From assembly GCA_964057225.1 (NCBI GenBank), contig OZ059897.1:8556001-8620000 (forward strand): a DNA stretch of 64,000 bases, in the 5' to 3' direction. A program made the position numbers and the translations under genes. The DNA comes from Auanema rhodensis. Its lineage: Eukaryota; Animalia; Nematoda. This document shows positions 12,023 through 15,632 of this stretch, one piece after another (the first letter of the stretch is position 1; each line of letters starts with the position of its first letter). The notes beneath the pieces are model-generated. The model saw nothing but the letters and a program-made list of their open reading frames with translations. It searched no databases and was not told where the DNA came from.

Positions 12023-15000
12023 TTATGACCATACATCTTCAATGTAGCGATCATTCTTCTTCAAATCCATTAGAAAAGCCTTGGCCTCAGATTCAGGTAA
12101 TTCTGCAAAAAATTGAAAAATGACCGATAGACAGATGAAAAATATTTCTTCATTTCTCCTCCCGCTAGCTTTAATCGTTAGATGGGATTATAAACGTCAC
12201 ATAAGAGGGCCATTAAAATGTCGAAAATGTAGAAAAACCAACTGTGGCTCGATTGGGGAGGGCAAGAAAGAAAATTGATCTTATGTATACTATGGTACAT
12301 ATTCAGAATTTGCGCATACCTTTAGATTGTTGAATGATTGCTTGGAATGTAGCCATTACATCTTTGGACATTCCTTTGGCATCCCCACAAATGAAAATGC
12401 GGGATGGGTGATCCCCTTCCAGTCCAATGAAATCAGATACCTATGAATAAAAATGTAATTTCCATCTGCGAGTTTGTAGTTGAATATACTTCTTTAACGC
12501 GAGATTTTAAAGCATCTTGAACGTATATTGGACGAGAAGGATCAGATGATCCTTGGCTTTCACAGACAATCAATTCAGTGAGAATTCCTTCACGTACATA
12601 AGCTTCCAACTCGTCTCTAAATATGATCAAGTTAGTCTTGAAATCACAATAAATCAAACCTATAAATAAAATCTTTGTTTAGATGACGACATCCAAAATA
12701 GAGATATCGAGGCACATTAGGGAAATTCTCAGGATCAGCTAATTTCAATTTTCTAAATAAGAAATACTTTCATAAAAAGTCTTCTTCAGTGATCTCTCTC
12801 ACAGCAGATGCTGGCAGAATCCCAAGAATACAGAAACACCGGTACCAGGGCCAATCATCATGAGAGGCATATGAGCCACAGAGGCAGAGTCAAGCGGTGG
12901 AGGTGGTAAACGGAATCTTGCAGCCTCTTTAGCCATAATCTTAATTTGTTTTTTAATTTGAAAAGATTATTTAAATTATTCTTCTGATAGTTAAATATTG
13001 TATATTTTGGGTGAATTTTATATATTGTATATATATACCTTGTACACATACTGTATATATCATACTCGAGCCTTTTGCTTAATCGGAAACCCCGAAAAAG
13101 CTGTTCCAAAAGTTTAGATTTCTCGACGCAACTTTCGTTAGTCGAAGCCCTAACGTACCTTGAGATACTGGGTTAAAACCGAATTGGTAGCCGCGATGGC
13201 GTCCCTTGTGCAAAACGTTCATCGTATATAATATGGGTGCTATGTTATTTTTGATAGACAACGCGACAGACAATCATAGAAAATTGGCATTTGGGCACGT
13301 TAACCTTTTTTTTTGTTAATGCATATGAGAATGGTATTTTGGTGAAAGTTTTTTGTTTTAACTGTAAATTAAAAAACTTACTTGAATTTTATCTCCAACT
13401 TTTATTGTATTCAACCATTCAGTGGCTACTCCTTGTCGCTCATATCTTAAATTCATTTTGTTTTGTGACAAAGTTATAGGATTTACCTCCTTCCTTCTTC
13501 TCCACTGAATGACATGATGGAATAAACAAAGCGGACTCTTCTATTTTTGGCGGAAGCAACACTATATGGTCGTGGCATCAACCGTGGGAGAAGCTCTAAA
13601 ATGAATACCTTCATACTATTTCATTTTTTTCAAAAAATACCTATGAGTCTATCGACATTGGGCTTCACACTTGGGAAAGCTAATAATACATCAGCAATTG
13701 ATAGTCCAGCCTTATACCATTCATATTAATTTAATTCTAGTCAAATAGCCATTACCTGTCTAACATACACCGTAAAGTCATTCATACCTTGGGCACTGCA
13801 CAACTCTAAAAGACGACGTTTTTCCCCTTCATTGCTTGCAGAGTCGGCTAAAATTCTCAAAAGTGGCTGAAAAATCAGAAATTGTATTGCTTGCTATCAC
13901 ATTTGCTCAACTCTTCCTGGAGCTCTTCTGATGTCTAAACAATACATGAAGAGATGTCGCAATGTAGTATTAGTAGGCACATGGGGTGGAACAACAGCTT
14001 TCAGTTTCTTAGTTGAAGGATCAACAGCAACTTTGAATTCGTTGTCTGCTAATGGTAATAAGCCCAATCTGAAAACAAATATTAATTAAACTAAGGTGAA
14101 GCGTTTACCTGTCCAGAATAAATTCGACTTCGGCTTCATTATTTGGGGCAATGAAGTAAAATGCATCTCCAGGTTCGTAAGGTAATGCTTGTTCATGCTC
14201 TATAATAACTTTTGTTTTACTTGATATGGTTTCAAAACTCTGAATAATGTTATATGGGGGTTTCTCTCATTCAAAAATAGTTTATATAAATACACGTGAA
14301 ATCACGTGGATCGTTCATTACTAATGAGTACATACAATGGAACGGTCATTCTGCTGATTTATGAAAATGGAAACTATTCCTATCATAAAACTAACCTCCC
14401 AAATCAATAACAATTTCTCTTTTAGGTTTTTCAACATCTGCATCCGTTAATAAGGCAGTTCCGACCACAGAGACAGTGAATGGTGCACTGACTAATAAAA
14501 AACTTTATGTTCAAGTATTAATTTTAAAAAAACGTACCAACTCCCATCATTTTAGCGCTATTTTGCCAAACAGATTTATCAACTTCAGGCTTGATATGTC
14601 CAAAAGAAGACGATAAAAAATCCTGTGGAGCAATAGGAACCCGCAGATTGTTATCCGTAGCTACTTTTTCTTCACCTAGAATATGAAAGGCATTAGTATT
14701 AAAGTTAGATTGAATTACCTTTAATAAGAGAAGGAACTGGGTATTCATAAGGGAGAACATGCAATTTGTCAGAAATGCTTATTTGCTGTTGTTGTGAGAT
14801 AGCCAATTCTTCTTTCTCCTCTTTTGTTTTAATAGCATTGAATTTAATTTTTGTTTCGAATAGAGATGCAAGTCTAGAAATTACAATATTATATATTTTA
14901 TTTCGGCACAACTTACCTTTCTTCGTCTATAGAAAAATGCTTTGCCAGTACATTAAAGAGATTCTCAATCCATGGCTCCACAACAAGCTCGAGTCTAGAA

Positions 15001-15528
15001 GTGGGTTCTCATAGTCGCATTAGGCTACTACTTACCCTACTTGATCATCGGCTTCACCTCTTTCCAAAATTTTTTCTGCTCCTAGATACTGTAATTGTTT
15101 TTCAATTTTTATTGGAACTCCTTGATATGTCGAATAGTTAGAATCGCCCAACCCTAAACGTGAAATTGCATAAATTTTCTAATCAACTTCAATGTTACCT
15201 AAGATTGCATATTGTACTGACTTTAGGTGCCCAGGCTCCAAAGTTCGTCGTGATATTTTCCGAACAAAACGATCACAATTTTCAGGAGGATCCCCATCAC
15301 CCGTGGACGAAACAACGATAACAACCAACTTTTCCTTTTCCAAGAAAAACTAACGAAATTCGCATAAAATAAAAATTTACCGGTGTATATAAATACCTTA
15401 GACTCATGACTATTCAAGACATGAAATGACGGTGTTAATCCTAATCGCTCAGCTTTTTCTTTGATTTGTCCCGCAATAGCTTCAGCTTGACCTGTTTGGG
15501 AGCCATAAGCGATAAGGAAACTTGTCAT
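12023..15528 (-). CDS. mtrr-1: Methionine synthase reductase (diflavin reductase), multi-exon
   Basis: N-terminal flavodoxin MTSFLIAYGSQTGQAEAIA, VSSTGDGDPPENC, LGLGDSNYSTYQG; FAD-binding LMPRPYSVAS; NADPH-binding MIGPGTGVSVF, LYFGCR, YVQD, FICGDAKGMSKDV; C-terminus RYIEDVWS*. Confidence 0.93.
13076..13180 (-). ncRNA. SL2-type spliced-leader RNA gene, nested in mtrr-1 intron 12940-13381
   Basis: 22-nt leader GGTTTTAACCCAGTATCTCAAG (13180-13159), then donor GTACGT, stem II TCGAC-TAAC-GAAA-GTTG-C-GTCGA, Sm site AACTTTTGG (13114-13106) and 3' stem-loop GCTT..TCGG-GGTTT-CCGA..AAGC. About 105 nt, the canonical SL2 RNA layout. Confidence 0.93.
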
Positions 15529-15632
15529 TACTACAAATTACAAATATACAATGATATTTATGGAAAAATAAGATATATATAAGAATGAATAAAAACAAAG
15601 TAATAATGCAAAAATATATTTCAAATGATTTA

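Follow-up and report, generated by a model that had tools for sequence, protein, structure and literature searches.

An intron of the methionine synthase reductase (MTRR) gene of the nematode Auanema rhodensis contains a complete gene for the spliced leader 2 (SL2) RNA, the small RNA that caps messages from nematode gene clusters. The locus lies within a stretch of 64,000 nucleotides (nt), the window (C5:8556001-8620000), of contig OZ059897.1 in an assembly of 181 Mb and 112 contigs (GCA_964057225.1); positions given below are those of the window. The host gene extends over 12023..15528 on the minus strand, with its ATG at 15528 and its stop codon at 12025-12023. Its intron at 12940..13381 (442 nt, minus strand) holds the entire SL2 cassette, which is sense to the host, both genes being read from the minus strand.

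The SL2 RNA gene

The SL2 RNA gene occupies positions 13074..13180 of the minus strand (107 nt, +1 at 13180). A cmsearch comparison with the Rfam SL2 model RF00199 gives a match from 13180 to 13074 that scores 75.6 bits against a gathering cut-off of 41 (E 3.9e-9 over the whole window) and covers all model positions, 1-110. This is the sole above-threshold RF00199 match within the 64 kb, and its score is the highest among the SL2 copies found across the assembly. The first-pass annotation, made from the letters alone, had placed a complete SL2 RNA gene here, and the Rfam model agrees; the coordinates, leader, GTACGT donor and shared strand with the host that it gave were all correct. No other RNA family is found by Rfam (E <= 1) in the host gene, including its introns of 217 and 196 nt.

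The RNA begins with the 22-nt leader GGTTTTAACCCAGTATCTCAAG (13159..13180), followed directly by the splice donor GTACGT (13158-13153, with the GT at 13158-13157), both read from the minus strand. The leader agrees at every position with the published SL2 of Haemonchus contortus and of Ancylostoma ceylanicum, and its use on mRNAs was published for other species. In the single fold predicted for this RNA, stem-loop I, which holds the leader and donor, and stem-loop II are followed by a free Sm-binding site and by stem-loop III. The Sm site ACUUUUGGAA (13104..13113, minus strand), located from the Rfam alignment and this fold, is single-stranded and fits the form AC?U{4,6}G that was applied to C. 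elegans SL RNAs (PMC7986045). The Sm site had thus been rightly recognized in the first-pass annotation, while the two stem-loops counted there are in fact three. The structure is taken from the Rfam alignment and from single folds; a consensus fold of the five SL2 copies of the genome based on MAFFT was poor, the underlying alignment ignoring structure.

Promoter and 3' box

Upstream of the RNA the five SL2 copies share a single block, CACCCrTaTnATrTACGr, whose end lies 38-41 nt from +1, and are otherwise unalike. In the intronic copy this proximal sequence element (PSE), a promoter element of the small nuclear RNA (snRNA) type, reads CACCCATATTATATACGA (13222..13239, 18 nt, minus strand) and lies 41 nt upstream of +1. 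The intervening spacer of 41 nt (13181..13221, minus strand) is TATA-less, which by comparison with the other PSE loci is the RNA polymerase II type. The PSE pattern CACCCRTNNNANRTACGR is exact in four of the five SL2 copies, the intronic one included; the copy at locus L004 is off at one position. The pattern has 38 sites in the genome compared to 1 for a reversed control. Four U1, one U4, two U5 and three Y RNA genes, all identified by Rfam, are found 38-41 nt downstream of such sites. Because genes for U1, U4, U5 and Y RNA, like the other SL2 genes, follow the 18-nt motif at that distance, it is the snRNA-type PSE of this genome.

Polymerase III genes of the Y RNA promoter class combine a PSE with a TATA box. 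The Y RNA loci of A. rhodensis carry the box TATATATA in addition to the PSE, a box that is missing from the SL2, U1, U4 and U5 loci. The three loci concerned, which code for Y RNA (stem-bulge RNA), are L030, L031 and L034 (G000:C5:7296377, 7306119 and 11872810).

The 120 nt upstream of the SL2 gene (13181-13300) contain 42.5% G+C, and the SL2 cassette as a whole forms an island of 42% G+C within an intron whose remainder has 21-22%. It had been suspected in the first-pass annotation that this GC-richer block might be an snRNA-type promoter. The suspicion was well founded: the block holds the PSE at 13239-13222, at the spacing that this element has in the other SL2 genes and in those for U1, U4, U5 and Y RNA.

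A candidate 3' box, GAGTAT (13062..13067, minus strand), lies 7-12 nt beyond the end of the mature RNA and is proposed from its likeness to words that follow other genes. Words resembling (A/G)AGTA(T) occur at a distance of 3-10 nt behind three of the other SL2 copies and behind each of the four U1 genes, where they read AGAGTA.

The gene organization is that of rhabditid SL2 RNA genes (RF00199; C. elegans sls-2), in which the 22-nt leader likewise runs into a GU donor, the Sm site separates the second and third of three stem-loops, the promoter is a TATA-less PSE about 40-60 nt upstream, and the genes form a small, dispersed multi-copy family. Mutation of the PSE lowers SL2 transcription in C. 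elegans (PMC2527325). Two features set the A. rhodensis gene apart from other rhabditid SL2 genes: its PSE sequence, CACCCRTNNNANRTACGR, is peculiar to this genome, and this copy is found sense within the intron of a coding gene. No paper describing a sense intronic placement for an SL2 gene specifically was found in the literature searched.

The sequence CACCCAAAATATACAATA (12996-13013, minus strand), which lies downstream of the SL2 gene at a distance of about 60 nt, resembles a decayed PSE. It is not followed by SL2-like sequence.

Other SL2 copies in the genome

Five SL2 copies were found genome-wide, counting the intronic one. The leader GGTTTTAACCCAGTATCTCAAG is encoded identically at two other loci and with a difference of one base at one further locus, at least three loci thus coding for the same leader. 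The intron DNA is 74-78% similar to two of the other SL2 loci within the RNA-coding part only. Spacers and flanks are unalike across the five copies, all of which retain the PSE and fold into three stems of differing sequence. Since only promoter and fold are conserved among them, the comparison argues for selection acting on both promoter and RNA of the SL2 copies, the intronic one probably included.

A second copy with the same leader lies on the minus strand of locus L045 (6668-6771; G000:C1:13966668-13966771). It is antisense inside a receptor guanylyl cyclase gene, between the transmembrane/juxtamembrane exon and the exons coding the kinase-homology domain. The kinase-homology and cyclase exons of this host are confirmed by Pfam. 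The transmembrane/juxtamembrane exon upstream was read by eye, Pfam matching neither extracellular nor transmembrane exons of the gene, and together with the kinase-homology and cyclase exons downstream it is the basis for the antisense placement in an intron. SL2 genes of this genome therefore lie in introns in either direction, the copy at L045 being antisense and the mtrr copy sense.

A very large SL1-like array is found at G000:C3:6741531-7099372 (L039-L044), with a spacing in multiples of 252 nt. Its genes score 54-62 bits each for an Rfam SL1 cut-off of 75.

The host gene and its operon layout

The host exons match the Pfam families Flavodoxin_1 and FAD_binding_1, and the exons carrying GPGTG and the carboxyl terminus match the NADPH domain of solved diflavin reductases. 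The host thus features the flavodoxin, FAD-binding and NADPH-binding domains of a diflavin reductase, and its orthologues carry PF00258, PF00667 and PF00175. The exon of 45 residues that borders the SL2-bearing intron has human MTRR as its best match. The same exon led to P0001, a protein of 534 residues from a relative (73% identity), which aligns along all host exons from 14764 to 12026. P0001 matches human MTRR with 1.7e-69 (237.9 bits) and the best cytochrome P450 reductase with 4.5e-42 (147.5 bits). The comparison between MTRR and P450 reductases was made through P0001, the host protein having been searched exon by exon and not as one joined protein. Because P0001, aligned along the host exons, favours MTRR over cytochrome P450 reductase, assignment of the host as the mtrr-1 orthologue, which was the name it bore in the first-pass annotation, is justified.

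Splicing of the intron is documented by RNA contigs from four runs of one study, which join 12939 to 13382 and skip 442 nt with GT..AG on the minus strand. Of 20 junctions 15 are listed, and 12 of these skip 40-50 nt; apart from the SL2-bearing intron, which is the host's longest, the long ones measure 217 and 196 nt. An intron of about 440 nt had been noted to stand out among neighbours of about 45 nt; this holds, and its borders at 12940-13381 are exact. Among the 15 junctions listed none starts from the SL2 donor at 13158, for which the first-pass annotation had proposed a check; the only event seen is normal removal of the 442 nt.

The host has the layout of a downstream operon gene, as had also been proposed. 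An upstream gene on the same strand ends with a stop codon at 15635-15633 overlapped by an AATAAA signal (15634-15629), and a U-rich, operon-like spacer of 104 nt (15529..15632, minus strand) separates that stop from the host ATG. An acceptor AG (15532-15531) precedes the ATG at 15528 by 2 nt. Spliced RNA contigs exist for both genes, the stretches that they skip reading GT..AG on the minus strand, and a contig of the upstream gene ends at 15617. The upstream gene has no match in Pfam, and no paper linking mtrr-1 to an operon was found in the literature searched.

SL2 trans-splicing of the host is plausible from this layout. The SL2 leader was not seen on the host mRNA contigs, for which the table of loose ends is empty, contigs often dropping such ends; an mRNA contig of a relative (L046) carries no leader at its 5' end. 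The first-pass annotation went further and suggested that mtrr-1 hosts the gene for its own leader donor. That idea is not separable from supply by other SL2 genes, since the same leader is encoded at no fewer than three loci.

RNA from the host intron

The host mRNA contigs have a depth of 136-215 in the four runs. Separate contigs from the middle of the 442-nt intron, with a depth of 3-6, are present once in each run (12981-13358, 13010-13335, 13061-13359 and 13013-13269). All four span the SL2 gene with zero mismatches. Mid-intron RNA is thus found for the 442-nt intron in 4/4 runs, compared to 1/4 for the 217-nt intron and 0/4 for the 196-nt intron. The contigs of the host message are RNA because they are spliced, and genomic DNA contamination does not account for the mid-intron contigs since the intergenic bins flanking the host are empty in the same tables. 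The pattern is suggestive of extra RNA from the 442-nt intron.

The mtrr intron in relatives

The homologous mtrr position was compared in six relatives. The intron measures 159 nt in GCA_036418205.1 (L047), 142 nt in GCA_043882145.1 (L049), 136 nt in GCA_900617985.1 (L051), 145 nt in a Logan DNA contig (L052) and about 60 nt in GCA_000701005.1 (L050), and it is absent from GCA_002742825.1 (L048). No SL2 is found by Rfam (E <= 0.1) in the four loci on which it was run, L047-L050, nor by a search for the leader pattern in any of the six. Comparison of the same intron in related species, which the first-pass annotation had put forward as a check, thus gives no conservation of the SL2 position. 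Because no SL2 occurs at the mtrr intron of six relatives, the cassette is, as far as these sequences tell, a lineage-specific arrival. Transport by a repeated mobile element is not supported: outside the RNA-coding part the intron has no further copy in the genome, and a target-site duplication is not seen.

A stem joining the intron ends

The two ends of the intron can pair in a perfect stem of 12 bp. Its 5' arm GUUUUUUAAUUU (13366..13377, minus strand, intron bases 5-16) begins 4 nt after the donor and pairs with the 3' arm AAAUUAAAAAAC (12948..12959, minus strand, intron bases -20 to -9), which ends 8 nt before the acceptor AG. The duplex has an energy of -9.5 kcal/mol and closes the minimum-energy fold of the whole intron, inside which the SL2 stem-loops are intact. 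A stem of at least 12 bp arose in 3-6 of 2000 shuffles of the intron ends, and 12 bp were reached by none of 6000 pairs of A+T-rich 40-mers at equal distance in this window. End-to-end stems have 5-6 bp in the two other long introns of the host and 3-8 bp in the homologous introns of four relatives. The acceptor is also atypical, reading AAAUUAAG here and UUCAG in the four relatives with intron sequence compared.

The stem could help in bringing the host splice sites together past the decoy donor of the SL2 gene; it could also be a relic of the cassette's arrival, or chance. The setting for such bridging would be a genome whose introns typically measure about 45 nt. The stem covers donor positions +5/+6, where it might hinder splicing.

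Origin of the nested arrangement

The SL2 gene of the mtrr intron is probably of the working type, a self-contained cassette that came by chance to lie sense inside the intron and is transcribed independently of the host. Such a cassette would comprise about 180-240 nt, with the PSE promoter, the TATA-less spacer, the 107-nt RNA and a probable 3' box. It would have entered, or arisen in, the mtrr intron in this lineage only. RNA polymerase II would initiate at 13180, directed by the PSE of the cassette in the same manner as for the other SL2 genes and for the U1, U4 and U5 genes of this genome, and the short capped RNA would bind Sm proteins and give its 22-nt leader to downstream operon genes. 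The host pre-mRNA would be transcribed through the cassette independently, the whole 442-nt intron being removed with its embedded copy. The anatomy of the gene, the promoter that it has in common with other loci, the splicing of the host and the lack of the cassette in the relatives are shown; that the intronic copy is transcribed, that it is so apart from the host, and that its RNA is used are inferred.

Precedents are known from C. elegans, in which small-RNA loci are often intronic. The 23 intronic PSE/UM1 loci studied there are uncorrelated with the host mRNA (r = -0.17), and their RNAs are far more abundant than it (PMC1474057). The locus of A. rhodensis is similar to these UM1/PSE loci (PMC1474057, PMC2527325) in that a gene for a small RNA of the Sm class lies with its own PSE in the intron of a coding gene. 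It differs in species, in PSE sequence, and in that independence from the host was measured in C. elegans and is deduced here. Intron-encoded small nucleolar RNAs (snoRNAs) are likewise small structured RNAs placed sense within an intron, but they are promoterless and depend on transcription and splicing of the host, whereas the SL2 gene has a full snRNA-type promoter. Given the antisense copy at L045, the six relatives without SL2 and the C. elegans precedent, the nesting is probably incidental. The arrangement has the look of a recent, accidental product of gene shuffling, not of a linked control circuit.

Several points weigh against this reading. The contigs from the intron extend as far as 178 nt upstream of +1, so that unspliced transcript of the host, and not SL2 RNA, must account for at least part of the intron RNA. 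The RNA data are assembled contigs, which are blind to starts, caps, strand, level and small RNAs. The Sm site begins with AC, compared to AU, GU or UA in the other copies. The leader is common to other loci, so its use is not traceable to the intronic copy, and the relatives compared are distant, with 47-73% identity in the neighbouring exon.

In a different reading the SL2 copy is coupled to its host. The RNA would be released from the intron, or the two genes would regulate each other, through transcription over the PSE, through the decoy donor and Sm site, or through the stem that loops the cassette out. The first-pass annotation had entertained a coupling of SL2 output to host transcription or splicing. 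The shared strand, the presence of the copy in the pre-mRNA that the contigs reaching upstream of +1 imply, the unexpected perfect 12-bp pairing between intron bases 5-16 and -20 to -9, and the atypical acceptor AAAUUAAG in place of the UUCAG of relatives are all in keeping with it. A mutual inhibition of intronic PSE loci and their hosts was also raised as a possibility in C. elegans (PMC1474057). However, the SL2 gene is equipped with a complete promoter, spaced in the standard way, the second copy is antisense in its intron, the position is not conserved in six relatives, and only the normal junction is seen among the 15 of 20 listed. The stem, which may be chance or an insertion relic, could equally hinder splicing through its position over the donor. 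SL RNAs require their own capped 5' end, which a fragment released from the intron would not have. Coupling is accordingly an unlikely account of the locus. A form of it in which the host has adapted to the cassette is similarly doubtful: the stem would loop out the SL2 gene with its decoy donor and Sm site and unite the donor with the weak AAAUUAAG acceptor, or stem and read-through over the PSE would tie SL2 supply to the host.

There is also little to recommend the notion that the gene is a silent or decaying SL2 pseudogene, intact in looks only. SL gene families do include pseudogenes (PMC7986045), the position is lineage-specific, the Sm site variant ACUUUUGG is unlike that of the other copies, and the contigs would be blind to the mature SL2 RNA, but the gene combines the top Rfam score among the copies with an unchanged leader and donor, three intact stems and a PSE that is exact to the genome-wide pattern and at the right distance, and its spacers and flanks are fully diverged from those of the other copies while the functional parts are kept, which is unexpected for a dead copy.

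Read as a working, self-contained cassette, the locus is an ordinary SL2 RNA gene that has a promoter of its own and lies, like many nematode small-RNA genes, within an intron. As it stands, the locus is in line with the known intronic small-RNA genes of C. elegans and is no departure from them. Its main value is for annotation, to which it adds one more SL2 gene and the snRNA promoter motif of this genome, CACCCRTNNNANRTACGR, 38-41 nt upstream of +1. It also offers a clean natural example of a pre-mRNA that undergoes normal splicing although it contains, in the sense direction, a strong splice donor and an Sm site. If the stem were functional, the locus would be a model for the way in which genomes with tiny introns handle a large intron with a decoy splice site.

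Further PSE sites of the genome

As a search pattern, the PSE motif can reveal additional small-RNA genes, and several unnamed candidates turned up. The loci L010, L012, L017 and L037/L038 have a perfect PSE (locus positions 1501-1518) followed by sequence that corresponds to no Rfam family at gathering score. The sequences behind these PSEs are candidate small-RNA genes with an snRNA-type promoter. That of L010 resembles a C/D-box snoRNA, with a TGATG word and a later CTGA.

Two divergent U1-like genes (L027 and L028; G000:C3:17716538 and 17719899) start with AUUCAACUUACCUGUCCGGAGG about 40 nt after a PSE. They are below the Rfam cut-off for U1 and lie inside a tRNA gene array. In the tandem tRNA array at G000:C3:17691311-17708460 (L018-L026) the PSE recurs about 64 nt upstream of tRNA genes, which is an unusual site for an element of the snRNA type.

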